Numbered from the stretch's first letter, positions 282-49,488 are shown. The stretch: DNA of 64,000 nucleotides from Cyanophora paradoxa CCMP329 (GCA_004431415.1 QPMI01000204.1:91166-155165), one strand, 5' to 3'. The notes: generated by a model not told the origin, from the sequence alone. A program made the numbers and translations.

Positions 282-789
282 GGGCCTGTTCCCAATGCAA
301 AGAATGATTCAAATTTGTGCAGCATCATTGAGAGAATTTGTGCGGCTTTGATTTGGATTTGCGGCTGTGATTTGGATGAGACTCTGAGACTTCGATTTGG
401 ATTTCGGGAGTTTTTGATTTCGATCGCAGTTCCGCGACCATCACGGATCGTGACGGCCACAGTTCCAGCGCCGCCCCCTTTCTGACGCAGTGCGATGCGG
501 CTCCACCTTCTGCGCCCCTCGCGGGAGCGGGGGAGGCTGTATTCCTCTCCCTTAGCGGCCCTCATTCGGTGGCGAACAGGCGAGCCCTCCGGCAAGGCCC
601 GCACGCCTAGTCCTGTAGAGCATACGGAAGGCTTAGACTTCGATTTCGACCCCTCGGTTTCGATTTCGATTTCGATCTCGAGGCCGAGTTGCCTATCAGA
701 GAGAGCCCGTATGATTGCTCAGCGTATACTGCTAGCCCGAACAGCTACAGGGCTAGTCCAGATAACGCGTGATGTATATCTGAAATGCA
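282..789 (+). repeat. Dispersed repeat family A, copy 1 (core about 385-789)
   Basis: Near-identical to 3003-3402, 43380-43834, 46089-46463 and others. Ends in hairpin CTAGCCC-N11-GGGCTAG, then CAGATA..TATCTGAAATGCA. Module 282-360 is shared with 29297-29376. Confidence 0.9.
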
Positions 790-827
790 GAGTTTACGCC
801 TGGCCACTTCTGAATTTTCAACAGTTC

Positions 828-1834
828 TCAATCAGAATGATTCCAGTTGTCTATCAAACGCGCCTTGCCTATCCTCACAGCTAGGCTGAGCAAAAATGAT
901 GCAGGAAGAGGTCCATCGATCTCCGCAAGTGTCTCGCGGTTCGCGAGACTTACGTAGACCACTTGTGCAAGGGGTTCGCCAGCAAGCACGGTTTCCACGG
1001 CTCGCCGAATCTGATTGCTGTCACGCTCGCCATTCTTGTACAAGCTCTGGGCCGCCTGCAGGCTTTTATAAAGCACGGTGGCAGAAGCACGCTCGGGGGC
1101 TGTCAGGTAGGCGTTCCTTGAGCTCAGCGCTGTGCGCGCACGCATGTCAGCCGAGGAAAACACTCGCATCCGAGGCAGGCTGGATGAACCAAGGCCATCG
1201 GGCTCGCGGACGATCGGCATGACGGCGACGTGAAGGTCCATGTGCAGGTCCCGCACCATACGCTCGATAACAATCGCCTGCTGGGCGTCCTTCTGGCCGA
1301 ACAAGGCGACCGTGGGCTGCACGACGTTGAAGAGCTTGCATACGACAGTCGCAACGCCGCGGAAAAAGCCCGCCCGCCCGCCGCGCGACGGGTCCCCCTC
1401 GAGAAGATCGGAGCAATTTTCAACCTTGACGTATGTGCTGAAACCCGGAGGATATAGCTCGTCCGCGCTGGGGTGGAACACGGCATCGACACCGCCTTCC
1501 GCGTCGAGCAGCTGCAAGTCGCGCTGCAGATCGCGCGGGTACGTAGCGAGGTCCTCGTGCGGGGCGAACTGTGCAAATCTTCATCAGGCGCCACGTGCGC
1601 GCTTTGCAATGCGGCGCGCGGGGCCGGCTCGCGTACCTGCTTCGGGTTCACGAAGATCGAGACCACCACGCGCCTGCATCTCCGCTTCGCTTCCTGCACA
1701 AGGCTGATGTGCCCCGCGTGCAGGAAACCCATCGTCGGGACGAATCCAATTGAGAATCCGGCGCCGTCCTGTGTCTGCCACGCACGCCGTGCCTCCCGCA
1801 TCGCCTGTACCGTCTCTATTACCGATGGGGGCAT
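828..1834 (-). CDS. panC: Pantoate--beta-alanine ligase (pantothenate synthetase), 2 GT-AG introns
   Basis: Motifs [56 protein letters not shown] and RLIDN. Introns at about 1569-1636 and about 1130-1189. Confidence 0.95.
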
Positions 1835-1956
1835 TGGTTGATGTGGTGCTTGATTAGCTCGAGCTCGAGCTCAGTCCGAGCGGTAGCGTTTGGCTAGCGC
1901 TCGCGCTTTGAGCTCAACAGAAACTGATCCGATCCCGTCCGCACTGCGAGTCTGCG

Positions 1957-2040
1957 ACTTGGAGTCACTTAAGCTTGTGTTTTCCTCTAGCTTGAAGCGC
2001 GTACTACGCCGCGTAGTCGCTCAGGGGTATATATGCCAGT
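1957..2040 (-). pseudogene. Short degenerate relic of the TAF1A-like gene 3' region
   Basis: gacttggagtcactt..gtgttt..cctct..tgaagcgc..tagtcgctca.gggt matches 12191-12250, with several small palindromic insertions. Confidence 0.6.
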
Positions 2041-2928
2041 TGGCACACACAGCAAAAATCCGCCGTGGTAAAGCAGCAAAGCGCCCCGCTGAGCAAGCAA
2101 GGGACCCGGGAGAGGATGAAATAGGTGCGGCTGCGCATGCCAAGGCGTGAGAGGAATGCCCCAAGGCATGGCGGGAGTGCCTGACCTGTGTCTCCAGGGT
2201 GCTCTTCTTCAAGCTTAAGGAGAACCTCCAGGCGTGCAAGTGTGGTCTTCACGGCATCACTGCATAAAGCATGTAGGGGCATCAGAGACATTGGAAAATA
2301 ATGTTGACAGGGATAAACCGTTGAACCTTCAAAACATCTCAGAGTCTGCCACAGTAGCCTCAGGGCCTTGGGATTGTAGCATAGACACAGTGCAGAGACT
2401 GTGAGGGCTGATCATGAACTTCGGAACTTCGGAAGGCCAAAAATGAGGGCTTAAAAATTGCCAAAATGAGGGCTTATTTCACGAAGCTCAGCGAGCTCAT
2501 GATCAGCAAGCTCAGAGCTGAGCTGAGCTCTCTCTTGAACAAGTCCGATGGTCGACGTCTCCAGCTGCAGTGCGCATGCAGCGTCAAAGCTTTCATGCGC
2601 TGGCCATGGGTGATCCCGTGAGTTTTCTCCCACTTGATCATGTCGTCGCAGCGCATCTGCCATGAGACTCTGAGACTTCGATTTGGATTTCGGGAGTTTC
2701 GATTTCGATCTGACCCGGCAAACCGCGCGCAGTTCCGCGACCCTCACGGATCGCGACCGTCGGACGGCCACAGTTCCAGCGCCGCCCCCTTCTGACGCAG
2801 TGCGCCCGCGCGCGCGTCGCGCGCAGGGTTCTACACGCGCTGCGGCACCTCCCCGCGGCCGCCGCGGTCACCGGGTCGCGTGGGGATCTACACAGCCCCC
2901 CTTCTGGCAGGCCGCCCACTCCCTGTCT

Positions 2929-3402
2929 GCGCTCTTCAGCGAGCAGCACCCATATTGGGGTAACAGTGCGCTCTCTGCGATTTCAATCTGCCATAAGACT
3001 CTTGAGACTTTCGATTTGGATTTCGGGAGTTTTTGATTTCGATCGCAGTTCCGCGACCATCACGGATCGTGACGGCCACAGTTCCAGCGCCGCCCCCTTT
3101 CTGACGCAGTGCGATGCGGCTCCACCTTCTGCGCCCCTCGCGGGAGAGGGGAAGGCTGTATTCCTCTCCCTTAGCGGCCCTCATTCGGTGGCGAACAGGC
3201 GAGCCCTCCGGCAAGGCCCGCACGCCTAGTCCTGTAGAGCATACGGAAGGCTTAGACTTCGATTTCGACCCCTCGGTTTCGATTTCGATCTCGAGGCCGA
3301 GTTGCCTATCAGAGAGAGCCCGTATGATTGCTCAGCGTATACTGCTAGCCCGAACAGCTACTGGGCTAGTCCAGATAACGCGTGATGTATATCTGAAATG
3401 CA
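2929..3402 (+). repeat. Repeat family A, copy 2 (preceded by a partial 5' module at about 2655-2800)
   Basis: Near-identical to copy 1. The 5' extension 2929-3000 is shared with 43282-43380. Confidence 0.9.
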
Positions 3403-3405
3403 AAG

Positions 3406-8928: not shown

Positions 8929-9208
8929 CGTTGCCGGAACGTTGGGCTGTGCCGATCCCGACGTGTCGTAACTCGAAGACGCCCGTACGCCAGGGCTCAC
9001 ACGGGCGCTGATCGTGGGGCTGAGCTCATGCAGACACCGGGCGATCCATGCGGGGCGCCTCACCTCTCGCACCCGCGCCCATTCTCCGCTACGTGCTCGA
9101 GCGCGCCTTGAGCTTTGGCGAGCAGCGGACGTGGAAACGAACGGGGAAAAAAAGAAGGGGGGGGGATGGGTTCAGGCGGTAGCTGTCTAGGAACTTTCGG
9201 CTGCGAAG

Positions 9209-10403
9209 ATGGTGCGCACGCCAGGCGCGCAACTGTTAGATCTAGCACCATCAACGCGCCCCGCACACTCCGCGCGCACCCCGCGCACACGCTGACTCGC
9301 TTCACCGCTGCCCTTGCTGTGCAGGTGTTCTATTTCACAACAATAGGTGCGCTCGCGCATCGCCGCTCTCTGTTGAGCCGCCGTCGTGTGCTCGCCACCG
9401 GCGCCGCGCCCGCCGCTCGATCCTCACGCGCTGCCCGGGCGACCTGTCTGCAGACCCGCAGTACACCATCTACATGGGAAAAGATAAATACGAGAACGAA
9501 GAACTCATCAGACACGGGTGGCCGGAGGACATCTGGTGCTCACTGCGAGGTTTTGACTGAGCGCCCGCCGCTGACTCGAAGACAGGTTTCACGTTGACAA
9601 GATGTCGTCTGCGCACGTGTATATACGTATGCCGAAGGGAAAGACTATTAACGATGTTCCACCGGAGGTCATAGAAGATTGCGCCCAGCTGGTGAAGCAG
9701 AACTCCATTCAGGGTGAGGATCGATATCTCGAGTGGTTGGCCTGTTCAGTATAAAACCCTAAACGATTTCGAAGGATGCAAGGAGAATAACGTTTCCATC
9801 GTGTATACCCCGTGGAGCAACCTGAAGAAGACGGGGGGCATGGATGTGGGGCAAGTTGGCTTTCACAGTGACAAACTGGTGCCAAGCACAGGTGGGGTCG
9901 TCGAGGTCACTCCGCTGACGGGACCGATTGCAGGTCAAGACAGTCAAGGTTGAGAAGAAGAAGGCAGAGATAGTCAACCGGCTGGAAAAGACTCGCGTTG
10001 AACGAGAGCCCGATCTTGCAGGTGCCTCCCCATGAGACCGTAGTACTTTGATGTACGTGTTGGTCTAAGTCCGCTTGTAGCGGAGCGTGAAGCTCGCGAT
10101 CGGGCTGAGCGAGCCGAGAAGAAGGAAGCAATGCGGCAAAAAGTCTGTGGCCAGTTCGTCCCATTCGTTGTCGTGTTCTGAAGTCGTGCTGCAGCAAAAA
10201 GAGGATCTGGAGCTAGCTGCAGAACGCAGGAAACTTGCTGAGCAGAAAGAGTACAGTGCGTTCCCTTCCGCTTCTTACGGATGATTATCTGACCTGGTTT
10301 TTATTGCCCAGCTTTCCTGAAAGAGGACAAGATGCACACGAATAAGGAGAAGGAGGCCAAATCAATTGAGGATGTACGTGCGATTGAGGAAGACTTTATG
10401 TGA
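9209..10403 (+). CDS. CCDC25: CCDC25/Jlp2-family (NFACT-R-like) protein; first coding exon is ATG only
   Basis: Spliced translation [77 protein letters not shown]. Confidence 0.93.
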
Positions 10404-10494
10404 GCATTTGAACACGAACCGAATCACGAGGTCCGGGTTATTCGATTTTCAAGAAGGGTGGGATGCATTTGCAGAGGCGACATATGGACCAGCT

Positions 10495-10720
10495 GCGTTC
10501 AGGAGTAGACACGTGATGCACGCCAGCAGCTAGCTAGCTGCGTCTGTGAACTACGCCTGTCTGGGCTACACATAGGAGGGTGCGGCCCTCGCCGTTGCCG
10601 GCCCGGCCGTTCCCCACCAAAACCCGTAAGGGGAGTAACGCTCCACCCCCGCACAGCCTAGGCCGTCTGCGTGTCGTGTGCAGCATCATGTCGTCGTTCT
10701 TGGGCGGTGGGAGTTCCTGC
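10495..10720 (-). repeat. Repeat family B copy
   Basis: Reverse complement of 43935-44162. Also matches 14503-14615 and 42399-42570. Confidence 0.85.
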
Positions 10721-11723: not shown

Positions 11724-11790
11724 CCCGACTCGGCGAGCCCGACTCGGCGAGTGCGTTTAGAGAGGTCTCGAAATCCAAATCAAAGCTCGC
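11724..11790. repeat. Short module C (GTGCGTTTAGAGGTCTCGAAATCCAAATCAAAGC)
   Basis: Also present twice in tandem at about 24429-24503 and as the reverse complement twice at about 29360-29447, where it lies next to A fragments. Confidence 0.75.
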
Positions 11791-14142: not shown

Positions 14143-14220
14143 ATCCGCATACAAAAAGCGGGTTAATACTGGCCGTAGCAACTCGAAGGCGCCAATAAAC
14201 TAGGGCTCCCGCCGCCGCCA

Positions 14221-14482
14221 GCTGATCGTGGGCCTGAGCTCATGCAGACACCGGGCGATCCATACGGGGCGCCTAACCTCTCGCACCCGCGCCCATTCTC
14301 GCTACGAGCTCGAGCGCGCCTTGAGCTTTGGCGAGCAGCGGACGTGGAAACGAACGGGGAAAAAAAGAAGGGGGGGGGGGATGGGTTCAGGCGGTAGCTG
14401 TCTAGGAACTTTCGGCTGCGAAGATGGTGCGCACGCCAGGCGCGCAACTCTTACAGCTAGCTCTATCTACGCGCGCCGCACA
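14221..14482. promoter_or_regulatory. Duplicate of the PAN2/CCDC25 bidirectional promoter, including the CCDC25 ATG exon and start of intron 1
   Basis: About 260-bp direct copy of 9007-9268 with few substitutions. Confidence 0.85.
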
Positions 14483-14502
14483 TCTTGACATTTCGCGTCA
14501 AC

Positions 14503-14615
14503 AGCCAGGCCGGCAACGGCGAGGGCCGCATCCTCCTATGTGTAGCCCAGACAGGCGTAGTTCACAGATGCAGCTAGCTAGCCGCTAGCGTACATCGCGT
14601 GTCTACGCTGAACGT
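14503..14615 (+). repeat. Repeat family B, terminal fragment
   Basis: Matches 44048-44162. Confidence 0.85.
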
Positions 14616-14687
14616 GTTGTGTATTAACATACAGAGTGGGCAAAAGTAATATGTTTCCTCAAAATGCTAGATCGCTGCTGGACGCAG

Positions 14688-16952
14688 CTAGATCGCCGCG
14701 GACGCAAAAACCTTGGGCTTGTTCTTGCAGCGTGCCTCGAGTTCTGGCCGGAAGTGGCGAATGAGCCCCTGCACAGGCCAAGCAGCAGCATCACCGAGAG
14801 CACAGATCGTGTGGCCCTCGATCTGCAAGCATATTCAATGGAGCTGCCGGTGACGAAAGAGGAGAAAAATTCAAACTGCATACCTGACGGGTGATCTCCT
14901 CGAGCATGTCAATCTCCTCGATGCGGGCATTGCCCGCAGCAAAGCGGTCCATGATGTCCATGAGCCAACCGGTTCCCTCGCGGCATGGAGTGCACTGGCC
15001 GCAAGATTCATGCTTGTAAAACTAAAAATAGATCAGACTGCATTCTCGAAAAAAACGATGCAAAAGAGATTGACCTTCGAAAGGCGAGCAATGGCAGAGA
15101 CGATGTCAGTCGACTGTTGGGACCCATCTGATCAGCGACGACAAAATGCCAGAGTAATATTAATAAAAATCGGACCTTGTCCATGACCATGACAGCTGCA
15201 GTGCCCAATCCAGACTTCACGTCCTTCAGAGCATCGAAGTCCATGCTATGGAAGGCTTAGAACGTAGGAAAGCATGGATGAAGAATCCGAGTCTTACAGG
15301 ACATCATCACAAATGTGCTTCGGAAGCACCGGCACAGATGAGCCGCCAGGAATCACGCCAAGAAGGTTGTCCCACCCTGCCCTCAGATTATCAGGCTGGC
15401 GCGGATGAATCAGACAAGCTAGAACGCACCGCCACGTATTCCACCGCAGTGCTTCTCCAAAAGCTCCCGCATCGAGATACTCATCTCCTCTGTCGCCCCA
15501 TCGAATCGAACGTGGGACCCACGGGCTTCACCTTACACTGACCTTCCACGGTGCAAGGATTGTTGACATGCCCCGAAATACAGAAGAGCTTCGTTCCAGC
15601 ATTGTTCTTGCGCCCGAACGATGCGAACCATTCGCCACCGCTGGTGAATGGAGCTTACATTTCAAGAATGGCACACGGACGAGAAAAGCGAACCGGCGAA
15701 GAATCGTAGGCGACACGGCCACAGTCTCGACGTTCGTGACAGTGGTGGGGCACCCATAGAGGCCAACACCAGCGGGGAACGGCGGCTTCAGACGTGGCTT
15801 GCCCTGCTTGCCTGCGAGATGCACCGGGTCAGCAAGCACTGGCAGACGCTGTTGAAAAAGGACGGAAAGAAGGCAGAAGAGCACACCCTCGAGAGACTCG
15901 ATCAGCGCCGTCTCCTCGCCGCAGATATAAGCTCCAGCGCCTGACGAAGGATCAGACGAGAAGACCGAAGCGAGCACGCACAGAAACAAACCGTAGTGGA
16001 CATATACGTCGAATTCGTAGCCACTGCCACAGGCGTTCTTGCCAAGGAAGCCAGCTGCGGGCGGTGTTGATCCGCGCACACGGCATGCGTTGCACCTACG
16101 CACCTGCGTAGGCTTCGCTGACGGCGCGCTCTAGAGCGTTGCGCTCGAGAACAAACTCGCCGCGGATGTAGATGTACGCTTAAGTCCCGCCGAGTCAGCA
16201 AGACGAGAGGGCGCTCATAGTGGGCAAGTGCGAACCGGCGCGGGCGCGCATGGCAAAGCCAGCGACGAGGCAGCCCTCGATCAGCTTGTGCGGGTCGTAC
16301 CGCATGATCTCGCGGTCCTTGCATGTGCCCGGCTCCGACTCGTCCGCATTAACGACAAGGTACGACGGCCTGCGAGGGCACGTCGGCTTGTGTAGAGGGC
16401 GCTGTGGAGAAACCGCACAACGCACCGGCCGTCGCTCTTCTTGGGCATGAACGACCACTTGAGGCCGGAAGGGAAGCCGGCACCACCGCGGCCGCGAAGA
16501 CCAGAGACCTTGATCTCGTTGATGATCCACTCAGGGCCGAGCGACAGAAGGTCCTTCGTCTTGTACCAGTCGCCCTGAGAAGCAGGCGGCGTTTGTGTAA
16601 AAGGGCATGCCTGGGCGGCAGGCGAAGACTCTGCCCACCCTCTTCATGGCGCCCTTGATACCGACATCGTGCTCGCCGTAGATGTTCGTGAAGACTGCGC
16701 TCGCGGGCCGCATTCAGCGCACGCCGCGTGACAAACGCGTGAGCTCGGGCACGCACTGCGATCCTCGTCTTTGAGCCCGCCATGCTTCCTCGCAGGTGCC
16801 GCTGCCGCAGTGCTGTTGAGCCGGGCGGACAGGCGGCCGGCTGCGATTCGCGGGCGGAACGGCGCTTCAGCGCTGACAGGGCCAAACAAGCGGAATATCG
16901 ACGCACCGTGGCCTGCCCGACGAACGAGAGCCCCGGCGACGCCCCGCAGCAT
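14688..16952 (-). CDS. NDUFV1: NADH dehydrogenase flavoprotein 1 (51-kDa complex I subunit), multi-exon, with mitochondrial presequence
   Basis: Motifs [63 protein letters not shown] and [11 protein letters not shown]. Arg-rich N-terminus [12 protein letters not shown]. Confidence 0.97.
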
Positions 16953-19093: not shown

Positions 19094-19163
19094 TTGCCAC
19101 TTCAAGAGCACTATAGCTATAGCTGTATTGCAATATTGGACACATGAAGTTTAGTATACATTG

Positions 19164-19540
19164 TGCATTTCAGATATACACACGCGTTATCTGGACTAGC
19201 CCAGTAGCTGTTCGGACAAGCAGTGTAGGCTGAGCACTGCGGCAATCCACTGGGCTCTCTCGGATAGGCAACTCGATGTCGAGATCGAAATCGAAACCGA
19301 GGGGTCGAAAACGAAATCTATTCCTTCTGTTGCTTTTTCTCACAGGACTAGGCGTGCAGGCCTTGCCGGAGGGCTCGCTCGTTCGCCACCGAATGAGGGC
19401 CGCTAAGGGAGAGGAATACAGCCTCCCCCGCTCCCGCGAGGGGCGCAGAAGGTGGAGCCTCATCGCATTGTGTCAGACTCTGAGAAGGGGGCGGCGCTGG
19501 AACTGTGGCCGTCGCGATCCGTGAGGGTCGCGGAACTGCT
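19164..19540 (-). repeat. Repeat family A, copy 3
   Basis: Reverse complement of the A core. Terminus lies 70 nt after the ATG13 stop. Confidence 0.9.
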
Positions 19541-19551
19541 CTCTAGTAGTA

Positions 19552-19690: not shown

Positions 19691-19719
19691 ACGACACGAC
19701 GGCATACTGTGAATTACGA

Positions 19720-30622: not shown

Positions 30623-30653
<31 letters not shown>

Positions 30654-33600: not shown

Positions 33601-36459
33601 CATATTTTATTGTCAGTACAGGAATTCCCCAGAATCTTATGGACAGACCGCAAAAGCAGAGCCGATCCCTGCGATATCAGCAGACTCCTGGGTGCCACCA
33701 TCGATCGCCTGAGGTGGCGTTCATAAAACAATGAGGATTGGAACACATTTGCTCAAACGTACTCGGTGAAGCAGGGCACAGACAGGAAGATTGGAGCAGT
33801 ACCGGCACATGCGTTGGTCATGGACAAGTGGTGGTAGCCAACCTGGTTTGCCACGTTCCGCATAACGCAAATGCCTTGCAACAGCATTGCGGCGTGTAAC
33901 AAGTGGCCAGGTCTCGCCTCGATCGACCTTCACTCCCTGCATTCCACTGTTGAGCATATAATATATCAGGCCCCTGTCAACGTCTTTCCCTGCTGCAGAG
34001 TCAGGTAACCGTGCAGCCGAGGAAGGGCCCAGAGGTGCGGGCCATATCGATCTGACAGGAGAAGCGTGTAGAGGATGACTTGGGCCTTGTACTGGAGGGC
34101 CCGTGTGCCGCCACCGCCAGAGCCCAGTGCCCCAGTCTTTAACTCAAATGGAATGCTGATGCTCTCACTTTCTCCGGAGATTCCTGCAGCCTGCTTCAGC
34201 ATGGGGGCGGATTCAAAAATGAATATGTCTGCACCATCCACAGGGACCAACCGAAGGCGGACAGTGGCATCCAGAGAGCCTTTTAATCCGTAGGTGGGGC
34301 TCCAGATGCTCTCTTCCACATCCGCGACCTGTTCGATGCACACTCGAAATTCGCGACCTCCAAACCAGACACGCCCCTCAGGAGCGGGCTGAGCACGGAC
34401 GAAAGTCGTCGCCCAATCGCCCACCTGCCGATCAATACAAGCTAAGAGCTTGTTCGTGATTCTCTGTCTAAAAAAATCAATGACCTTTTCGGCAGACTTC
34501 AACAAATCCGCCCGAATTTCCTCTTCTTTTGCCCCAATTGCATATCTGAGCTCCTGCTTCAGCAAGCAGAAAAAAAAGCGAACCTTCTTGGAACGAACAC
34601 TTCTTCAATGTGCTGAGTGAGAGTGGAAGATATGTCCGCTTTGATGCTTTCGGCAGAAAAGTTTCGAGAGACAAGTGCACGCTGGAAAACAGAATGAAGG
34701 AGTGTGCCTCGCAGAATTGCATTGCGGCTCTCCCCTACTTTAGTCCCTCCCTGCATCAAAGATTCATAAAAAAAGCAACTAGCGGTAGCACAGAGCTTAC
34801 CGGAAAAATCTCGTCTATCAATGCGGACCGCATGCACCGCCAGGACTCGGAGACACGTGTTCCACTCACAAGTACATCAGGGTGCTGAACGAGCAAGTTC
34901 TGTGCTCAGCATGTCAGAAGGTGCTCAAGTGCTTCACGGACACATGCCGGCCACCTTCCTGTGGTCCACAACGATGTCCCCTCCAGCATCTTCCCCAGGT
35001 TCAAGCACAACATTTACCCGATCGCCTACCTCGAAAGACTCCTCCTGCCAACTCTCACGCAGATGCAGTCTCCACGTCCTTCCAGCATACGCTTCTGTGA
35101 AGGTACCGCTTGCCGAGCAGCTGGTTTCGATCGCCGGTGCTTTGCATCCTCCTCCTTCGTTGTCTTTGTCTCCGTGAAGAACAGCCACTTCGTTTGGCCC
35201 TTCCACATCGTGCCTGTGCTTTCTGGCGCTGCACCGCTGCTTCTCTTGCTCTGCTTCCCACTCGGTTGCATCTGCACACGTTAGAACCTGCGAGCAAAAA
35301 CGTTCATGACTCAAACATCCCCCACGGCTGCAAACTAGGTTAGCTTGCCTTCTGAAGGTATGACGAATTGGGCAGAACGGGCTCCAAGCCGCCGACTTCC
35401 AGGACAACGAGATGAAGAACCTCCCGGCGCATGTTCACCGGGCGTGCAGATGCTGCTGAGGTGGCCGCGTCCAGCTCCCCGAAGTCCTGCGAGTGGTCAG
35501 GCTAGCGTATTTATATATTTGAACACTTCCAATGAAAGCGCGCACAATTGTGGACAAGTCCAGCTCGAACTTGAAATCATCGGATGCAGATTGCGCGGCC
35601 TGTGCATGCGCAGGCCGCCTGGGGCTTTTCGCACTGGTGATGTGGCAAGCTGAAACCGGTGCCGCGAGGCCGGGATTCTCGGCGGCTGGAGGGTTTGGAG
35701 CTCGAGGTGCTGGGATCTCGTATGCAAGCAAGGCGAGCTCGAAGCCCGGGCTGACGTCCATGCTGCTCGGGCTGGCAACATTCGTTATGTTCTGGAGAGG
35801 TGTCCGCTGCGAGGCGTTCGTTGGAGAGTCCGCTGCGTCCATTTTTCGCTTCTTGCACGCGGGGTTCCTGCTGGGAGAAGTTGCAGTGGATGAGGCGGGC
35901 GATCCCTCCGAACCATCTCGCAGTCCGTTGAGAGCGTGCAAAAGATCCGATTGGGCCTCCGCGTACGCCGGGTTGACGCAGTCGGAGTTCATTGCCACCT
36001 GTTCCCGTGGCTGCTGCGCGGGTCGCGCTGCGGACTCGTCGAGCCAGGCGCAGATAGCGCTCCGGACGACTGGGCCGCCGTCCTCCGCCACGCTCGGCCC
36101 TAATTACTGTTACGCAAGCGGCGCACGGCCCGCCGGAGTTGACACGGCGCACCCGAGAGGAGCTCGTCGGGAAAGTTGTTCGCCTGAACGGTACGCCGAC
36201 TGGCCGATGCACCGCGGACGCGATCCAAGAGCTTCGGGTCTATATCTCGATTCCAAACGACCTCGGGCTGGGCCGGCTCGGTGAGCGGGACTCGAACCGC
36301 GCATGCCGTGCGCACCTCGGGCTCCGCCATGGAGCGGCCCGGTGTCTGACTTGGATCGTCCACGGGAGGAGCGCATGCGCCCTGCGCCGCAGCGTGCGAC
36401 GCAGCTTGCAGCGCCCTTCCCTTGAGCTCGACTCCGCGCCATCGAGGCGGTGCGTGCAT
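29563..36459 (-). CDS. DNA2: DNA2 nuclease/helicase, multi-exon; start approximate
   Basis: [24 protein letters not shown], Fe-S cysteines ([11 protein letters not shown]), Walker [27 protein letters not shown] and [11 protein letters not shown]. Confidence 0.95.
30610..30663. repeat. (TG)n microsatellite followed by a poly-G run, inside a DNA2 intron
   Basis: Seen directly in the sequence. Confidence 0.9.
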
Positions 36460-36576: not shown

Positions 36577-39020
36577 ATGGCAGCCTTCGTATGTGCACTC
36601 CCCGGCGTGCGGGTGGCCCCGGACTGTCGTCCGGCAGTCCCCGCGCAGCTGCAGCGCGACTTCCTCGGGCAGCGTATGCTGGTGAGCGACAAGGGTCGGC
36701 TAGCTAGTGCAGCGTGCAGCTAGCTCTAAGCGCATATCCTCAAGGGCTGATCTGCGTGCGCAGCGGCGAGCGCGAGCGCACGGGACGCCCGATCGCAGAT
36801 TCGAGTTCAACCTCGTCGCTTCAGCAGCGCCGGAAGGCGAGGTGAAGCGGGTAGCGCTGATAGCGCTGGGCTGTCCGAAAAATACTGTCGACGCTGAGGT
36901 CATGCTGGTGCGGGCTGAACTCTTGGCCTAGTCCAGGCCTAGACGATCGCTTCCTTGAGACGATCGCCCGAGAGCTCGCGTTTCTCCGCAGGGAGATCTT
37001 CACCGGAAGGGATTCGAGATCACTTCCGAAGTTGACAAGGTGCGCTTGTACAACAAAGCCGACGGCAGCGCCTCGAAGCCTTCGATTCTGACAAGTTTTC
37101 TAACGCAGGCCGACTGCGTGATCATAAACACATGTGCTTTCGTCGAAGAGGCAAAGAACGAGAGCATCGAGGCGATCTTAGAAGCCGCGCAACTGAAGCA
37201 GGTCATCGATATCATACCCGAGTACATGGAAGAGCTTCTCATAAGAGCGCAGGCTGGAAACGTCCGGGGTGTAGTTGTGACGGGATGCCTCGCCCAGCGG
37301 TACAGTGGCGAGTTGGCGGAGGAGATTCCAGAGTCAGACGCTGTGGTTGGATTCGCCCACTGTAAGTTCGACCTCGGCCTCCGACGGATCGCCCCTCAGG
37401 CTGACTGCTCTCAGATGCGGACATTCCTAAAACAATCGAAAAAATCTTGGAGGAGTCGGGCATTCGTGACAAATCGAAATCAGATTTCAAATCGAAATCG
37501 AAATTCTCCGGCCTTCCGGCTCGTCAGAACAGGAGAGTCGCTGTCGGCAGTGCCACCGTCGGGTTCAGGTTCGAGGCGCTGTTTTCCAACTTAAGCATCT
37601 GATCAATCTTGATATATATATGCAGGCCGGAGCATGACCGCCTCCGCATCACTCCCCAGGTTCAGAGCTCTGATTTTTTTCAAGTTTGTCCTAACCCGAA
37701 GCAGCATACTGCATTTTTGAGAGTTGCGGAAGGCTGCGACCATGCGTGCACATTTTGTGCCATTCCTGGTTTCCGGTGCTTATTCTCCTTGGGATTACTC
37801 CCGTGCCCCCCATGACTCCAGCGTAGGGGAAAGTTTCGGTCAAAGCCTTGGGATGCTGTTCTCGACGAGGCGAAACGTCTTGTGGACTCCGGCGTCAAGG
37901 AACTCAACTTGATTGCAGAGGATACGAATCAATATGGGATGGTAAAAATGAAAACGATAGTATGTACGATTCAAATGAAAGCCAGGCATATGATTCTTGC
38001 AACACGCAGGATTTTCCTTTGAGTGATGGCCGCCGATTATCAGATTTGCTCCGGGCTTTAAACGAGCTGGAAGGCCTGACTTGGATCCGCATCCTCTACG
38101 CCTATCCTTCATATTTCAGTGAGGATCTGATCACGGCAATCGCTGAATTGCCGAAGGTGGTGAAGTACTTGGATATGCCCCTCCAACACATTTCTGGTCC
38201 TGCTTTTTCAAATTATGGGACTCTCGGGTCCTGACAGCAGAGCATGCAGATGGAGTGCTCAAGAATATGAACAGGCCAGGTCGGTCTCACACTGAGAACC
38301 TCCTGAATCGACTCCGCGAAGGAATTCCAGGTGATTCACACTCCGTAGATGAACGGGACTTCATCACTGATTCGCCATCAGGTCTTCGAATCAGGACGAC
38401 GTTCATCGCAGGGTTCCCAGGGGAGACCGACGACGACCACCGGTTCGATCGCTGTTGCCGATCAATTATTCGCCGCTAGGTTTTAAGATCAATGTGCAGC
38501 GAATTGTGTGAGTTCATCCAGGAGTTCAAGTTCGAAAGAGCCGGATTCTTCGCATATTCGGGTCCGTAGCACCCCATTGCCCCCTTGCGGGGGCCAACGG
38601 ACAAGGCCACGGCAGAGGAGGACGGGACCCCGGCAGGCGATGGCACATTGGCATTGCCCCTGGTTCCTCAAGAGCTTCGAGATGCACGGCGGGATGAACT
38701 AGTCTCTATCCAGCAGCAAATCAGCGATTCTCTTGCCAAGCAAATGATGGGCCAGGAGGTGGAGCTGATGGTCGACGCTGTGATGGCTGATGGGTCTGGA
38801 GCATCCGTCGCTGCTCTGTGTCGCAGCACATTCGATGCACCGGAGATAGACAACATCGTGGAGGTCTTTGCCTTGCTTTTTTCAATGCTGCTGCTGTTTC
38901 TTGATTGACAGCTTTCGCCAGGTCAAACAGCTCAGCAGGCCAGATGTCGAATCTGGCGATGTGATTACGGCTAGAATCATCGGGGCGTTGGACGGCGATC
39001 TTTTTGCTGAAATGAAGTAA
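36577..39020 (+). CDS. rimO: RimO-type radical-SAM methylthiotransferase (ribosomal protein S12) with putative plastid transit peptide
   Basis: LGCPKNTVDAE, INTCAF, VTGCLAQR, AEGCDHACTFCAIP (CxxxCxxC), YLDMPLQH, RTTFIAGFPGET and APEID (TRAM). N-terminus MAAFVCALP. Confidence 0.9.
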
Positions 39021-39107
39021 CGTTGCTAGCTAGCTGCATCTGTGAACTACGCCTGGAAAGGTGCAGCCGTCTCTGTTGCCAGCCTGGCCGACTGTTAAAG
39101 GGTAGCG

Positions 39108-39670
39108 TGCATTTCAGATATACACACGCGTTATCTGGACTAGCCCAGTAGCTGTTCGGGCTAGCAGTATACGCTGCAGCTGAGCAATCATTCGGGTTCT
39201 CTCTGATAGGCAACTCGGCATCGAGATCGAAATCGAAACGGAGGGGTCGAAATCGAAGTCTAAGCCTTCCGTATGCTCTACAGGACTAGGCGTGCGGGCC
39301 TTGCCGGAGGGCTCGCCTGTTCGCCGCCACTGAGGGCCGCTAAGGGAGAGGAATACAGCCTCCCCCGCTCCCGCAAGGGGCACAGAAGGTGGAGCCGCCT
39401 CGCACTGCAGAAAAGCTGGGGCGAGTGGGGGCGCCCTCGAGCTCGTGGTGGCGAACGGGTGATCCCTCCGGCAAGGTCCGCACGCCTAGTCCTGTAGAGC
39501 AATAGAATTAATATTAGATTTCGATTTCGACCCCTCGGTCACCGGGTTTCGATTTCGATCTCGACGTCAAGTTGCCTATCCGAGAGAGCCCAGTGGATTG
39601 CTCAGCGTACACTGCTAGCCCGAACAGCTGTGGGGCTAGTCCAGATAACGCGTGTGTATATCTGAAATGC
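39108..39670. repeat. Inverted pair of A copies (39108-39410 minus; 39446-39670 plus) forming a fold-back
   Basis: Both outer ends are A termini (GCATTTCAGATATAC ... GTATATCTGAAATGC). Confidence 0.88.
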
Positions 39671-40029
39671 CATGATGCAGCATAGTCTTCGCAAGTTAGC
39701 TAGTTCGTGTCCAGACGTAAGCTTGATGCATATGCTGTCCAAACTGACAGTACTGGTCTGTTCAGATCGTCAAAGCCACTAGCCGCCTAGGCCTGGCACA
39801 TTGTCCAAAGAATGTTCTGTTCAGATGAAAGCGCCTCAAATCTAAGAACTAGTACATATACAATACTGTACAATTCAAGCGAGAATCTGAAACTATGGAT
39901 TTGAAACTACAAGGGATGACAAAGCAAAAGCTTTACTTAGCAAAAGGTTTGCGACTAAAACAACAAATTATCGTGGGATGACAAAAGAAAGGGGGGGAGA
40001 GAATAGAGCGTGGAGGCAGAAAACCAGCT

Positions 40030-42398: not shown

Positions 42399-42570
42399 TG
42401 CGTTCAGCATAGACAGAGCTAGCTAGCTGTGTACTATGCCTGTCTGGGCTACGCATAGGAAGGTGCGGTCCTCGCCGTTGCCGGCCCGGCCGTTGCCCCC
42501 CCGAGGCCCGTAAGGGGAGTACTACGGTAACGCTCCACCCCCGTAAGGGGAGTAACGCTCCACCCCCGCG
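42399..42570 (-). repeat. Repeat family B copy
   Basis: Matches 10495-10652. Confidence 0.8.
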
Positions 42571-42937: not shown

Positions 42938-43220
42938 TTTGATGCACCGGAGATTGACAACATTGTGGAGGTTTTTGCCTTGCTTTTTTCAGTGCTGCTG
43001 CTATTTTGTGACAAACGCTGGCAGGTCAAACAGCTTAGCAGGCCAGATGTGGATTCTGGTGATGTGATTAGGGCTAGAATCATCGGGGCGTTAGACGGCT
43101 ATCTGTTTGCTGAAATGAAGTAACGCTGCTAGCTAGCTGCATCTGTGAACTACGCCTGGAAAGGTGCAGCCGAGTCTGTTGCCAGCCTGGCCACTCCCCC
43201 CCTAGACTGTAAAGGGTAGC
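42938..43220 (+). pseudogene. Relic of the rimO 3' end (end of penultimate exon, last intron, last exon, 3' flank)
   Basis: Aligns to 38831-39107 with the intron retained and no 5' part. Confidence 0.9.
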
Positions 43221-43281
43221 GCTCCACTCACGCCAAGGCCGAGGCTGTACATGTGCTCGTGACAGGCTTTGTGACAGGTTT

Positions 43282-44162
43282 GCGCTCTTCAGCGAGCAGC
43301 ATCCATATTGGGGTAACAGTGCGCTCTAGATCTCTGCGATCATCAGCATCGGATATCGATCTGCCATAACTTAGTAAGACTCTGAGACTTCGATTTGATT
43401 TCGGAAGATTTGATTTCGATCTGACCCGTCGCCGAGTCGACGGCGACCGCGCCCAGTTCCGCGACCCTCAGGGCCTCACGGATCGTGACGGCCACAGTTC
43501 CAGAGCCGCCCCCTTCTGACGCATGCGCAGTGCGATGCATATGCGGCTCCACCTTCTGCTCCCCTCATGGGAGCGGGGGAGGCTGTATTCCTCTCCCTTA
43601 GTGGCCCTCAGTGGCGGCGAACGGGCGAGCCCTCCGGCAAGGCCCGCACGCCTAGTCCTGTAGAGCATACGGAAGGCTTAGACTTCGATTTCGACCCCTC
43701 GGTTTCGATTTCGATTTCGATCTCGAGGCCGAGTTGCCTATCAGAGAGAGCCCGTATGATTGCTCAGCGTATACTGCTAGCCCGAACAGCTACTGGGCTA
43801 GTTCAGATATCGTGTGTGTCATATCTGAAATGCAGCTGGGCTTAGGTCGGACGTCTTTGATTACGACTGCGATTAGGGGCTTCATCATGATGACTGAGCT
43901 GCACACGACGACGCGATGCTGCAACTTTGGCAAACAGGAACTCCCACCACCCAAGAACGACGACACGATGCTGCACACGACAGGGGCACGGCCTAGGCTG
44001 TCACGGGGGTGGAGAGTTACTCCCCTTACGGGCCTCGGGGGGGAACGGCCAGGCCGGCAATGGCGAGGGCCGCAACCTCCTATGTGTAGCCCAGACAGGC
44101 GTATAGTTCACAGATGCAGCCAGCTAGCCACTAGCGTACATCACATGTCTACGCTGAACGCA
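43282..44162 (+). repeat. Longest composite A (to 43834) + linker + B element
   Basis: Contains most of the A and B modules seen in other copies. Ends 26 nt from the CFAP119 stop. Confidence 0.88.
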
Positions 44163-44188: not shown

Positions 44189-45418
44189 TTACTTCTTCCC
44201 TGCTGGCTTCTTCAAAGGCTCCTCCATCTTGACCTGCCTTGGATTAGCACTGGATCGATATCTGCTCCAGACACCATGCACACACCTCGAATTCAGAAAG
44301 CTTCTCCATGAACTGGCCAGCGCTCTTGGCGATCTCACTTGCAATCTGACGTTGGACATTTGTTTCAAATCTCAAGTACATAAATTTTTCACAAACCTGT
44401 TCCCGGATGACAGCCAAGTGTGAGCTGACGGCTGCATTGATGACTTCTTGCATGCCTTGGCCTCCCACTGCGTCCGGATTTGAGAGGCGGAAGGCGGTAG
44501 AAAAAATTGGAGTCACCTTGAGCTTCTTTCAATTTCTCGACAGCTGCTTCGCGCTCTGCAGCAGCGATTGCCTCGTAATCTGGAGGTGGCTTGGGCAACC
44601 ACTCGGGAACTGTAAAGAGTAAGCGTCTGGAGTTCTCGGTTTTGGTAAATGGGTCATTTATACCTCCCTCCGATAGGGGCGGAAAAAATGGAGGAAGCTC
44701 CACAAGTGTATCAGTTGAATCAACGTCCAGGACTGGCAGGCGTGTAAACGCGTGCTGGTAGAGCTTGAAGTGCCTGTAGTACCTGCAGGCCGGCAATTGT
44801 TTTTGTATAAAAAAGCAAAAACGAACAAACTGCCAGATTGCACGTGTCTACAACGTAGTCTGTTATGAGTTTGACGTCGGGCAGGCTGAAAAGGCCAACG
44901 CTGAAGGGTGGTCGCTGTACGCTGTGGCGGATAAGAAGGGACTGAAAGAACTCGAAGCTCTTCTTCAGCCCGAGATTTTCCTCTGCAGAAGTGTTAGAGG
45001 CGCGAAACTCGAGGTGAAGCTACAGGCACCTTCTAGCTTCGCGTGGTTAGCTTTGACGATGGAGAAGAACGCCGACGTCTTCTCGACGGAAAACTCGAAA
45101 TCCTTTGCGGCCGTGCGGCCTGTCAAGGGGGGGAGGCGAGTTTGGCGGCTAACGGTAATGACAGCGCGTGGCCATGCAAAAGGATATCGGAGCGTGTGCA
45201 GGTAGAGATCGAGCACCACGTCCTCCCTAGAGAGCGGCGCAGGACGCCTGAGCCCCACGTACTCCGCTAGCAAGCTGCAAGCCGCTAGCATCAGAGTGCA
45301 AGATGCGTGCGAAAACATATGGCGCCGCGCACGCGATACCCTCTTCCGAGTAGAGTTTGCCCTCCAGTGACTGCAGCTGCGAGACGGAGAGGTCCGACCA
45401 GACCAGCGACCCCGCCAT
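44189..45418 (-). CDS. CFAP119: CFAP119 (C1a-32/CLAMP family) flagellar central-pair protein; contains a U12 AT-AC intron
   Basis: LDLYLHTLR/AAKDFEFSVEKTSAFFSIV, LLIRHSVQRPPFSVGLFS and TYYRHFKLYQHAF. Confidence 0.85.
45113..45187 (-). other. U12-type AT-AC intron (75 nt); second copy at 48125-48199
   Basis: 5' splice site ATATCCTTTT, branch CCTTGAC, and 3' AC 10 nt after the branch A. Removal restores a CFAP119-like reading frame. Confidence 0.88.
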
Positions 45419-46088
45419 GTAGCTAGGCCAGAGCGCGCCAACGATCTTAAGCTCAAGGTACTATAGCTATGCACAAGCGCGCCAGCTAGCTATAGCTAAA
45501 GGTGGCACAAGCTTAAAGCCCTAGACTTGAGGTCAAGCCATCACGGCTTGAGGACATCACCGAACCGTCGACGGCTTGGTTGAACTCTAGATAATTTTAA
45601 CTACGTATACGTATACATGCATCCGTTTACGTACATCTACATGTACACGTTCACCTCACCGACCGGCCAGGCCGCCCTTCGAGTCGACTCGCCCCGGGCC
45701 CCGTAACTTATAATTAGTAAAAATGCAATAGTGGCCTCGAGCTCGGCCGCCGGCGCCGGCCGCGGGCCTCGAGCTCGTCGTCCAACCTAGGGCCTCTTAT
45801 CGTAATCGCAATCAAAGACGTCCATTTTCGCTGTCTGCTAAACATTCGAAGTTCAGCTCTTCTGTGATATGTGGCGATTCGCAGGAGCCAGGAGCCATCT
45901 TCTGCAAGTCATCACTGAGTCACCAACTTCTCGCGAATCTGATCATGAGAACAAGTCTGAGGGCTGAGTGAGAATCTGAGGCTGACAGACTTTGACTTTG
46001 ATCTCAGAGTCTGAGGCTGACAGACTTTGACTATGATTTGGAGGCTGGCTCTGATCTCAGAGGCGGGGGGGGGGGGGGGGGACCGTCG

Positions 46089-46463
46089 GACCCTCACGGA
46101 TCGTGACGGCCACAGTTCGATTCCAGCGCCGCCCCCTTTTTGACGCAGTGCGATGCGCGCGGCTCCACCTTCTGCGCCCCTCGCGGGAGCGGGGGAGGCT
46201 GTATTCCTCTCCCTTAGCGGCCCTCATTCGGCGGCGAACGGGCGAGCCCTCCGGCAAGGCCCGACCCGCACGCTTATATTAGTCCTGTAGAGCATACGGA
46301 AGGCTTCGATTTCGATTTCGACCCCTCGGTTTCGATTTGGATCTCGAGGCCCTGAGGCCGAGTTGCCTACCAGAGAGAACCCGAATGATTGCTCAGCGTA
46401 TACTGCTAGCCCGAACAGCTACTGGGCTAGTCCAGATAACGCGTGATGTATATCTGAAATACA
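46089..46463 (+). repeat. Repeat family A copy (duplicate at 49102-49476)
   Basis: A core. Terminus lies about 12 nt from the Pro-rich gene stop. Confidence 0.9.
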
Positions 46464-46475
46464 TTATCAAGTCTT

Positions 46476-48430
46476 TCACCATGCAATTATGCCAACATCA
46501 TTATCATCAGCATTCTGGTCGTCATCTCCCGCCTCAGGAACCTCCCAGCTGTTGTCCAACTCAGGCACACTCTCGGTCCAAATGAGCTCAGATGAAGTAC
46601 ACTGAAGAATCTGCACAGGCGTCAGACAATGCACAGATGCACTGATGTGTAAAGAACACAGACATCCGCTGCTTTCTGCTCAGTAAGACGGGCTTGCTCT
46701 TCGAGTGCAGCACGCATGGCCTCTGCCTGGGCACGTTGAAGGTCATCAGCCTGGTCACGAAGATGCTCTTCAAAAGCGGCCTGTGCTGCTGCTTGAGCTT
46801 CCTGCGCCTTCATATACTGGATGTTAGCATTCGCTAGTTCGCTTGCCTAAGATTGGGCATACCTGTGACCCTTCAATCGCCTGCAAGCCCCAAGCTGATG
46901 TTGGAGACAATGAAACATAGGGCGACTCCATGGGTGAGATGGATGGGGATGGGGATGCATTCTCATCTGAGGAGACCACACTGTGGTGTTGTGGAGGGAG
47001 TGGTTGGTCCATTGCAGGCATTTGCGCATCCAGAGATTCGGGTGGAGCGTCCTGCATAGGCCTGGGTGGGGCCACAATGGGTGGAACTGGAGCCTCCAAA
47101 GGCATGGGTGGCGCCTCCATGGGGACAGGTAGAGCCTCCACAGGCATGGGTGGCGCCTCCATGGGGACAGGTGGAGCCTCCACAGGCATGGATGGCGCCT
47201 CCAAGCGGACGGGTGGAGCCTCCACAGGCACGGGTGGCATGTCCCTAGGCATAAGAGGTGCCTCCATGGGGACAGGTGGAGCCTCCACAGGCATGGATGG
47301 CGCCTCCAAGCGGACGGGTGGAGCCTCCACAGGCACGGGTGGCATGTCCCTAGGCATAAGAGGTGCCTCCACAGGCATGGGTGGCGCCTCCATGGGGACA
47401 AGTGGAGCCTCCACAGGCATGAGAGGCGCCTCCACAGGCATCTGAGGTGCCTCCACAGGCGCCTCCACTGGTACAGGTGGCGCCTCTACAGGGGTGAAAC
47501 CTCCATTCACAGGCATGGGTGGCGCTTCCAGAGGCACTGGTGGGGCCTCCAGCGCTGCTGGAGCATCCTGAGATACAACTAGGGCTGCCTGGGCGTTTAC
47601 AGATTCGGAATTTGGCGGCTTGACGGCCACATATGATTCCAGATTCGGTGGAACAGGTTGGCGAGCAGATGAGGCAGACACTCTAGCAGAGTCGCCAGCC
47701 GATGTCCCGCCAAAGTCAAGTGCAAACCTCTGGGACATATCATCTGAGGGCTCGTGTTCAGCAATGTACGCGTATATACATGCAAAAACAGGCACACACC
47801 AAGATTACACCTGACATATGCGAAGTTGTGCCCTTCTGGTTTCCCTTCCTCGTCCTGCCCATTGCCCTGGCCGACCCCGAGACAGAAGAACTGATTCATG
47901 CTCCAGTCTGAGTCTCCCGCGGGATGGATGTTATACAGTTTCTTCCCATCCTCAGATTTTCCCGCTGCAGAGAGGAAGACGACCTGAGATCGAGGATTCG
48001 ATCCGACCTGTTGCCACTCGGCGACCGAGTCACTCTGGTACAGCACGCTCCCGTCTTCTGCCGATTTGAGCAGGAAGAGGTAGCCTAGCCGGGTTTTAAG
48101 GACCTCTGCGGAGAACCTGCGGCCGTGCGGCCTGTCAAGGGGGGGAGGCGAGTTTGGCGGCTAACGGTAATGACAGCGCGTGGCCATGCAAAAGGATATC
48201 GGAGCGTGTGCAGGTAGAGATCGAGCACCACGTCCTCCCTAGAGAGCGGCGCAGGACGCCTGAGCCCCACGTACTCCGCTAGCAAGCTGCAAGCCGCTAG
48301 CATCAGAGTGCAAGATGCGTGCGAAAACATATGGCGCCGCGCACGCGATACCCTCTTCCGAGTAGAGTTTGCCCTCCAGTGACTGCAGCTGCGAGACGGA
48401 GAGGTCCGACCAGACCAGCGACCCCGCCAT
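46476..48430 (-). CDS. Putative chimeric gene (CFAP119 5' exons joined to the body of the Pro-rich gene), or a pseudogene
   Basis: Created by the duplication junction at 48117-48123. In frame only if the AG at 48118-48117 is used as acceptor. Confidence 0.4.
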
Positions 48431-49488
48431 GTAGCTAGGCCAGAGCGCGCCAACGATCTTAAGCTCAAGGTACTATAGCTATGCACAAGCGCGCCAGCTA
48501 GCTATAGCTAAAGGTGGCACAAGCTTAAAGCCCTAGACTTGAGGTCAAGCCATCACGGCTTGAGGACATCACCGAACCGTCGACGGCTTGGTTGAACTCT
48601 AGATAATTTTAACTACGTATACGTATACATGCATCCGTTTACGTACATCTACATGTACACGTTCACCTCACCGACCGGCCAGGCCGCCCTTCGAGTCGAC
48701 TCGCCCCCGGGCCCCGTAACTTATAATTAGTAAAAATGCAATAGTGGCCTCGAGCTCGGCCGCCGGCGCCGGCCGCGGGCCTCGAGCTCGTCGTCCAACC
48801 TAGGGCCTCTTATCGTAATCGCAATCAAAGACGTCCATTTTCGCTGTCTGCTAAACATTCGAAGTTCAGCTCTTCTGTGATATGTGGCGATTCGCAGGAG
48901 CCAGGAGCCATCTTCTGCAAGTCATCACTGAGTCACCAACTTCTCGCGAATCTGATCATGAGAACAAGTCTGAGGGCTGAGTGAGAATCTGAGGCTGACA
49001 GACTTTGACTTTGATCTCAGAGTCTGAGGCTGACAGACTTTGACTATGATTTGGAGGCTGGCTCTGATCTCAGAGGCGGGGGGGGGGGGGGGGGACCGTC
49101 GGACCCTCACGGATCGTGACGGCCACAGTTCGATTCCAGCGCCGCCCCCTTTTTGACGCAGTGCGATGCGCGCGGCTCCACCTTCTGCGCCCCTCGCGGG
49201 AGCGGGGGAGGCTGTATTCCTCTCCCTTAGCGGCCCTCATTCGGCGGCGAACGGGCGAGCCCTCCGGCAAGGCCCGACCCGCACGCTTATATTAGTCCTG
49301 TAGAGCATACGGAAGGCTTCGATTTCGATTTCGACCCCTCGGTTTCGATTTGGATCTCGAGGCCCTGAGGCCGAGTTGCCTACCAGAGAGAACCCGAATG
49401 ATTGCTCAGCGTATACTGCTAGCCCGAACAGCTACTGGGCTAGTCCAGATAACGCGTGATGTATATCTGAAATACATTATCAAGTCTT

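Follow-up and report, generated by a model that had tools for sequence, protein, structure and literature searches.

Canonical Helitrons begin with 5′-TC, end in CTRR-3′, insert at an A^T target and carry a hairpin approximately 10-20 nt before the 3′ end. The non-autonomous Helitron2 elements of the alga Chlamydomonas undergo one-ended transposition, and their 3′ ends are over-abundant (PMC3627910). Hairpin repeats in very short spacers behind genes are known from bacteria, where the REP/REPIN sequences are moved by RAYT, an HUH protein (PMC3116915, PMC3337134), and the SIDER1 and SIDER2 repeats of Leishmania, approximately 0.5 kb in length, lie mainly in 3′ untranslated regions (UTRs) (PMC2689281, PMC2943621). 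Here we compare with these systems two families of repeats, A and B, from a 64,000-nt stretch of Cyanophora paradoxa CCMP329 (GCA_004431415.1; QPMI01000204.1:91166-155165), which is referred to as the window and in which all positions are counted from the first nucleotide.

The window is the end of a C. paradoxa chromosome. A TTAGGG telomere array of about 7.1 kb, with occasional variant units, occupies positions 56863-64000 and is preceded by a G-rich stretch (56290-56860); the array was left out of all searches. The approximately 57 kb before the telomere are filled with dense, ordinary housekeeping genes having many short introns. For the genome of this organism a mean intergenic distance of 770 bp, many convergent genes with overlapping 3′ UTRs and a content of 11.5% unknown repeats have been reported (PMC6704402). 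A search of the literature for Cyanophora repeats like A or B found no describing paper.

Termini of families A and B

The initial annotation of the window had proposed that A is a mobile repeat of the spacers downstream of genes, and its sharp common end and unrelated flanks support the view that A is mobile and non-coding and that one of its ends is fixed and bears a hairpin. All 11 annotated termini were recovered using TATCTGAAATGCA with two mismatches or fewer; these are located at 789, 3402, 19590, 24729, 29524, 39671, 43834, 46463 and 49476 on the + strand and at 39108 and 19164 on the - strand. One extra match, at 24050, is without an A body. In a multiple alignment of the A copies the homology ends at ...GCA in every one, and the sequences beyond this point are unrelated.

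Two conserved hairpins are located just before the sharp ...TATCTGAAATGCA end. The pattern CTAGCCC-N11-GGGCTAG occurs 10 times in the window, where 0.39 matches are expected, and the CTAG of the first hairpin lies 33 nt inside the element; the hairpin CAGATA...TATCTG is found 7 nt short of the end. Almost every copy retains both stems (paired cells, 97.6%), and none of the changes is compensatory, for which reason covariation is neutral on a structural role of the hairpins. Fold energies compared with those of shuffled sequences gave z-scores of only about -1 to -2.3.

Family B likewise possesses a single nucleotide-sharp end, consisting of CTAG palindromes (GCTAGCTAGC), a hairpin (GCGTAG...CTACGC, 8 nt before the end) and then CTGAACGCA. 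The strict motif CTGAA(A)YGCA is matched 14 times in the window against 1.9 expected, and 11 of the 14 matches are A or B ends. It is present at eight of the 11 A ends and three of the four B ends; the other A ends are off by one base, and the B copy terminating at 14616 ends in CTGAACGTG. The GAA(N)GCA end motif is at none of the four other two-copy repeats in the window, and the motif TGCRTTYCAG, sought behind all stop codons, is not enriched outside A and B (three matches, approximately two expected). The termini of the two families are thus of one shared design, a finding new in this analysis, and the end signature is unusual.

Read in the sense of the adjacent gene, the heads close all three reading frames, within 13 codons for B and within approximately 30 for A, as read from the sequences. 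The palindromic GCTAGCTAGC holds the stops of one open reading frame (ORF) on the CCDC25 strand and of the putative PAN2 frame. The word CTAGCTAG occurs eight times where 0.47 occurrences are expected (at 3406, 10530, 14574, 36700, 39026, 42419, 43129 and 51224), mostly in B heads or at or just after stop codons; on either strand its palindrome supplies TAG in two frames. A 30-nt fragment of a B head is located at approximately 51195-51234, within the divergent gap between the Pro-rich gene and FDPS.

A copies and their 5′ boundaries

The A copies had been described as having a fixed 3′ end and ragged 5′ ends. The fixed 3′ end stands, but simple raggedness does not, since there are two 5′ boundaries that are each common to two copies. 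The type-1 boundary, CGGGCCTGTTCCC, starts the copy at 281-789 (+), with its hairpin terminus at 789 and the panC stop 38 nt away at 828-830, and the internally deleted copy at 29297-29524 (+), whose terminus is directed toward the DNA2 side, with the stop anywhere from 38 to about 1000 nt away. The type-2 boundary is common to the copy at 2925-3402 (+), in which terminus 3402 abuts GCTAGCTAGC and the putative PAN2 stop, and to that starting at 43278 (+), which has its terminus at 43834 and extends with an 89-nt linker to 43923. Three nucleotides inside this boundary the terminus recurs as a short inverted copy, TGCGCTCTTCAG.

The remaining copies are shorter than these full type-1 and type-2 copies. 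An older copy at 19164-19545 (-), with 91-93% identity to the others, has its terminus at 19164, separated by 70 nt from the ATG13 stop (19091-19093). Next to it, at 19528-19679 (+), is a variant A terminus of about 62 nt, ending at 19590, followed by an 89-nt linker ending in TGCA; the SYS1 stop (19720-19722) is 40 nt past the linker. The copy at 24545-24729 (+), with its terminus toward the upstream region of the UTP4-like gene, had been singled out as the exception, and it does face the upstream side of this WD40 gene. A young copy at 39108-39425 (-), inserted into a B-like flank, has 87 nt between its terminus (39108) and the rimO stop, and an older one (87-93% identity to the others) at 39440-39671 (+) has its terminus, at 39671, 358 nt from a putative GRAM-like stop at 40030. 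The copy at 46080-46463 (+) terminates in TATCTGAAATACA, 12 nt from the stop (46476) of a Pro-rich ORF; its twin at 49093-49476 (+) is in a 3013-nt tandem duplication and represents no independent event. A 5′-part fragment without a terminus is found at 2662-2814 (+).

No direct repeats of 7 nt or more were found flanking any copy, from which we conclude that there are no target-site duplications of this size, and none of 2-6 nt were seen by eye at the five two-ended loci. Scans of the repeats against Rfam and for tRNAs gave no match. Retroposition of A in the manner of a SINE or LINE is ruled out by these results (no duplications, and no tRNA or Rfam match that would indicate a Pol III head), together with the lack of a tail at the fixed end. 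A 170-aa ORF running through A in the gene sense has no relatives of comparable length; the sole other match, to 13 short stretches of a repetitive 2126-aa protein, is most likely due to low complexity. The A terminus pattern had no matches in metagenome, viral or GTDB prokaryote contigs. Domain and homology searches of approximately 60 ORFs of the window revealed no transposase domain, in agreement with the annotation that no autonomous partner is visible here.

Several smaller features accompany the A copies. Words of the (GATTTC)n type recur within A. A repeat unit of approximately 40 nt (...GAGGTCTCGAAATCCAAATCAAAGCCCGAGTGCGTTTA...) is found at 24421-24504, 29358-29450 and 11736-11790, arranged in tandem and in either orientation, and adjoins the 5′ sides of two A copies. 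The region of the 24729 copy is bracketed by CCAATGAGATTGAGGGGG, an exact 18-nt inverted repeat (24241-24258 and 24751-24768) that includes a CCAAT box; the WD40 gene downstream may use it as a promoter word. The tandem duplication mentioned above spans 45106-51136 in long near-identical stretches, each unit having the Pro-rich gene and one A copy.

B copies, composites and paired copies

Four copies of B were found. That at 10494-10719 (-) has its terminus, at 10494, toward the 3′ end of CCDC25, and an ORF on that strand stops inside the GCTAGCTAGC of B. The copy at 14499-14616 (+), which has the variant terminus, is directed toward the 3′ side of NDUFV1, the stop of which is putative in position; a candidate NDUFV1 exon at 14624-14881 was rejected because it is without homology. 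The copy at 42399-42521 (-) is the exception for this family, with its terminus toward the 5′ side of the GRAM-like gene. The fourth, at 43935-44162 (+), terminates at 44162 and is 81 nt from the putative CFAP119 stop at 44244; the annotation had SYS1 and CFAP119 reached through the linker or B. B-like sequence also forms the 3′ flank of rimO (39025-39107, +), from 5 nt after the stop (39018-39020) to the A terminus. The head of a possible third family, TGCATTCAG (24173-24181, +), is tentatively recognized on the BRO1 side, where an ORF stop (24167-24169) precedes it by 3 nt and the BRO1 stop is putative.

Composite structures are present at two loci. The variant A terminus with its 89-nt linker is 97% identical between 19552-19679 and 43796-43923, the common stretch ending in TGCA again, and at 43834 the order is A, linker, B. 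The rimO 3′ end is duplicated at 42938-43207 (+), in a 270-nt fragment comprising part of an exon, an intron, the last exon and B-like flank that is 89% identical to 38831-39107. The duplicate matches rimO up to ...GGGTAGCG and then goes on B-like, whereas rimO goes on with the TGCATTTCAG... of A, and the break falls exactly between ...GCG and TGCA, where A starts. The duplicate is a one-sided empty site, which fixes the A boundary to the nucleotide and shows that the B-like flank is older than the A inserted in it. On the right of the 39108-39671 pair, the flank resembles the B tail no more closely than shuffled sequences do. The duplicate itself is situated approximately 70 nt upstream of the 43834 A copy, and it may have been captured by that element or be an independent insertion.

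The back-to-back pairs 19164/19590 and 39108/39671 reported previously are real. The arms of the latter are 90.8% alike, whereas the 39108 arm shows 95-96% identity to the young copies; in the former, the 19164 copy is old and the short 19590 arm groups with 43834. Because the arms differ in identity and subfamily, the pairs are separate insertions of different age and no single foldback unit. The TGCATTCAG head at 24173 and the 24729 terminus make up a tentative third outward-facing pair. Between the convergent genes ATG13 and SYS1 the distance from stop to stop is 626 nt (19094-19719), of which 516 nt are A and linker. The two stops were thus approximately 110 nt apart before the insertions, and the 3′ UTRs either overlapped or were very short.

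Placement relative to genes

The placement of the repeats is real and non-random. The previous observation that ten of the 11 A ends point at gene 3′ ends holds as to the facing; the ends at 46463 and 49476 are, however, one event, and four or five of the ten are between convergent genes, where either orientation faces a gene 3′ end. No A end is found in the five divergent promoter gaps, as had been noted. We employed a null model in which each of 10 events, the tandem twins being counted once, was assigned a uniformly distributed position within its own spacer and a random orientation. A terminus facing a stop at 90 nt or less was observed for 5-6 of the 10 events against 0.95 expected (P of approximately 1e-3 to 1e-4), with the provisos that the 90-nt threshold was picked after the data had been seen and that two of the stops used are ORF-based. 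Inclusion of the SYS1 stop gives seven of 10 events against a hand estimate of about 2.9; the expectation is this high because the ATG13-SYS1 spacer contained only about 110 nt of original DNA, so that closeness there is forced. If the ATG13-SYS1 events are omitted, five of eight are observed where about 0.85 are expected. Hairpin termini within 90 nt of a stop number 5-6 and 5′ ends 0-1 (P = 0.016 to 0.11).

The annotation had further argued that tolerance of insertions could not explain the orientation, an argument that proved statistically weak. Orientation is informative in tandem spacers only, and there three of the four A events fit (P = 0.31), or four of six for A and B together (P = 0.34). 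In addition, the + strand carries eight of 10 events (nine of 11 termini), which are directed toward the telomere (P = 0.11). The gene-relative orientation bias is therefore confounded with a plain strand bias, and strand describes it equally well or poorly.

Comparison with described elements

A and B are gene-end-associated non-autonomous transposons, and as such they are of a type already known. New from this window are the A/B composites, the common 5′ boundaries, the one-sided empty site, the age gap between the arms of a pair and the confounding strand bias.

The resemblance to Helitrons that had been pointed out for A holds in part. Like canonical Helitrons, the repeats have a hairpin close to the 3′ end, 7 nt (A) and 8 nt (B) from it, no target-site duplications, no long terminal inverted repeats (TIRs), and capture or read-through of flanking DNA. 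They differ in having neither 5′-TC nor CTRR-3′, A ending in ...CTGAAATGCA-3′ and B in ...CTGAACGCA-3′, with 5′ boundaries that start CGGG, GTYTGCG or CAGG; the CTAG of the first hairpin is 33 nt inside A. Nor is there an A^T target, the base after the terminus being G, A, T or C, although the absence of duplication does fit. We therefore use the Helitrons as a working analogy and do not assign A or B to them.

With the Helitron2 elements of Chlamydomonas (CRe-1/2/3 and Helitron-1N1_CRe; Bao and Jurka 2013, PMC3627910) A and B have in common an algal host, a non-coding nature, a hairpin near a fixed 3′ end and an excess of 3′ ends. The likeness extends to read-through composites, a 5′ T start in one subfamily and an inverted copy of the other end located 0-3 nt from the 5′ boundary. 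In contrast to those elements, the repeats end in ...GCA, lack a significant asymmetric inverted repeat at a distance of 20-30 nt from the 3′ end, are not inserted after TTTT and show none of the 7-19-bp duplications of CRe-1/2/3. The inverted repeats of the Helitron2/Helentron type were not detected in A or B, the sole inverted match being that of TGCGCTCTTCAG to the very end in one subfamily. The repeats also do not have the structure of TIR elements or miniature inverted-repeat transposable elements (MITEs), as duplications are absent and such inverted ends as occur belong to separate copies or amount to a motif of 9-10 nt.

Similarity to REP/REPIN sequences is found in the hairpin repeats themselves, in their location in very short spacers behind genes, often as inverted pairs and without duplications, and in the fixed short end motif beside the hairpin (PMC3116915, PMC3337134). 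The bacterial repeats are, however, prokaryotic and 20-100 nt in length, and the pair arms in Cyanophora are separate insertions of different age. SIDER1 and SIDER2, which have become part of messages in Leishmania (PMC2689281, PMC2943621), are comparable to A and B in size and, probably, in position. SIDERs are extinct retroposons with demonstrated effects on mRNA decay and translation, whereas A and B show no sign of retroposition, having neither tail nor duplications.

Origin of the repeats and of their placement

We favor, with moderate confidence, the explanation that A and B are non-autonomous, one-ended transposons of the rolling-circle type that have been kept in very short gene-downstream spacers and now lie in the tails of their neighbors. 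They would be short (approximately 0.1-0.55 kb) non-coding elements depending on the same machinery, encoded outside the window, which would recognize one end made up of CTAG-rich palindromes, a short hairpin and a single-stranded tail, ...CTGAA(A)YGCA-3′. Transposition would be replicative and one-ended, rolling-circle in the HUH/Helitron-like sense with non-canonical ends; copying would stop at the hairpin terminus and start at variable or alternative 5′ points. One-ended copying of this kind yields several 5′ boundaries for one fixed 3′ end, as well as read-through composites (A with linker; A with linker and B), and leaves no target-site duplication. Since the spacers behind genes are very short, copies would persist almost only just behind stop codons, where they would become the 3′ UTR or the termination zone of the neighboring gene, and the three-frame stops in the A and B heads would allow a gene to tolerate insertion at its very end. 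The anatomy of the copies, the terminus common to A and B, the absence of duplications, the age gap between pair arms and the closeness to stops are read from the sequence; the rolling-circle mechanism and selection as the cause of the placement are surmised. The transcripts of at least some neighbors are likely to enter A or B, considering the gaps of 12-87 nt (for PAN2 perhaps 3), the nearly filled spacers and the published overlap of 3′ UTRs (PMC6704402).

Several points weigh against this explanation. The canonical Helitron ends and target are not present, and asymmetric inverted repeats of the Helitron2 type are not significant, the best 5′/3′ complementarity being no better than in shuffled sequences. 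Two features are more suggestive of a TIR element, namely the short inverted copy of the terminus that one subfamily has close to its 5′ boundary and the outward-facing termini on both sides of three loci. Finally, gaps of 3-12 nt are no obvious result of survival alone.

The machinery might instead pick out gene 3′ ends, for example through single-stranded DNA, R-loops or a nucleosome-free termination zone, and dock with the hairpin end toward the stop, the element then becoming 3′ UTR or terminator. We regard this as fairly unlikely. The gaps of 12, 38, 40, 70, 81 and 87 nt, and possibly of 3 nt in two cases, speak for it, as do the preponderance of hairpin termini over 5′ ends near stops and the like behavior of A and B, which have the same terminus; on the other hand, the flanks have no target motif, orientation in the informative spacers is no better than stated above, the 24729 copy and the B copy at 42399 are exceptions, the older 39671 copy is 358 nt from the stop, and closeness is partly forced by spacers as short as that of ATG13-SYS1 before insertion. 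In a more far-reaching form, which we consider unlikely, A and B would represent a new group of eukaryotic transposons, with a hairpin and a GAA(N)GCA-3′ end across unrelated families, that targets gene termination zones in one fixed orientation, from a few up to tens of nucleotides past the stop, and supplies three-frame stops and a new 3′ UTR or terminator, as a counterpart to REP/RAYT. The outward-facing termini that bound 19164-19590, 39108-39671 and 24173-24729, and the TGCGCTCTTCAG 3 nt from the 5′ boundary of type-2 copies, could instead mark A as a cut-and-paste TIR element (a MITE or foldback) delimited by TGCAT(T)TCAG ... CTGAAATGCA, the single-ended copies being remnants. No target-site duplications occur at these loci, the arms are of different age and subfamily, the inverted motif, which includes an indel, measures only 9-10 nt, and B has no inverted repeat at all, and so we judge it quite improbable that A is of this kind.

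The bacterial HUH elements of the IS200/IS605 family are established to insert in a strand-specific manner with respect to replication, and this provides a precedent for orientation being set by the chromosome: insertion would take place into single-stranded DNA at forks replicating toward the telomere, and most of the neighboring genes would simply happen to be on the - strand. The nine of 11 termini (eight of 10 events) that lie on the + strand and point toward the TTAGGG array from 56863 are consistent with such a process, to which we nevertheless attach little probability; the bias reaches only P = 0.11, the two - strand copies are exactly those facing the + strand genes ATG13 and rimO, and the B termini are split 2:2. 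It is very improbable that the repeats are immobile and that a 3′-flank module has passed among neighbors through gene conversion or ectopic recombination in the subtelomere. The location in the last 57 kb before a telomere, the 3-kb tandem duplication and the other two-copy repeats, including the copy of the rimO 3′ end, would be expected of such a process; 11 copies in both orientations with one nucleotide-sharp end beside unrelated flanks, subfamilies of different age, and the same end signature in a second, unrelated family are not.

Neighboring genes

The strands of panC, PAN2, NDUFV1, ATG13, DNA2, rimO, the UTP4-like WD40 gene, CCDC25, CFAP119/CLAMP, FDPS and SYS1 were confirmed by homology. 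Identification was based on a Pantoate_ligase domain (Pfam) and eukprot model tig00000852_g5042 for panC; on the UCH domain and on exonuclease exons matching residues 968-1157 of human PAN2; on UPF0004 and TRAM domains for rimO; on NFACT-R for CCDC25; and on PF09801 and eukprot model g5048 for SYS1, with which the stop at 19720-19722 was placed. The gene previously annotated as UTP4 is a WD40 protein by homology. The GRAM-like and SYS1 ORFs gave no usable match in the protein atlas.

The annotated gaps between terminus and stop are for the most part correct: those of panC (38 nt), ATG13 (70 nt) and rimO (87 nt) are exact, and those of the Pro-rich (12 nt) and GRAM-like (358 nt, given earlier as about 360) genes rest on ORF ends with modest coding scores. 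PAN2, DNA2, UTP4 and BRO1 were searched exon by exon, and their exact stop codons are putative. The gap of 3 nt given for PAN2 applies only with a putative last GT...AG intron; otherwise the stop is at 3555, 152 nt away, or, in another frame, at 7 nt. The 38 nt given for DNA2 found no support. ORFs ending at 29563 and 29616 were rejected as the terminal exon, being without DNA2 homology, and the last DNA2-homologous exon (motif VI) is near 30640-30750, so that as much as about 1 kb may separate the stop from the 29524 terminus.

Other repeats

Besides A and B, the window contains four two-copy repeats with 89-98% identity, namely 8970-9267 and 14180-14482, 30052-30298 and 35666-35912, 16380-16680 and 53516-53837, and 54015-54270 and 55955-56233. 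Some of these are situated in divergent promoter gaps. The coding part of the Pro-rich gene has a 21-nt periodic repeat at 46946-47539 and 49959-50552.

Significance

To our knowledge, transposons with known targeting aim at Pol III genes, promoters, heterochromatin or specific sequences, and not at the ends of protein-coding genes. Targeted docking of A and B would, if real, mean that a eukaryotic DNA transposon chooses its targets by a new rule, and a compact algal genome would be renewing its 3′ UTRs and terminators from mobile DNA. The common end motif is in either case a simple handle for finding the autonomous element. On the plain reading, too, A and B fill most of several gene-downstream spacers and carry stops in all frames. 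This bears on the gene models and UTR annotation of Cyanophora, the published annotation being without UTRs, since A and B, to judge from their positions, probably define the message ends of the essential genes PAN2, ATG13, SYS1 and rimO.

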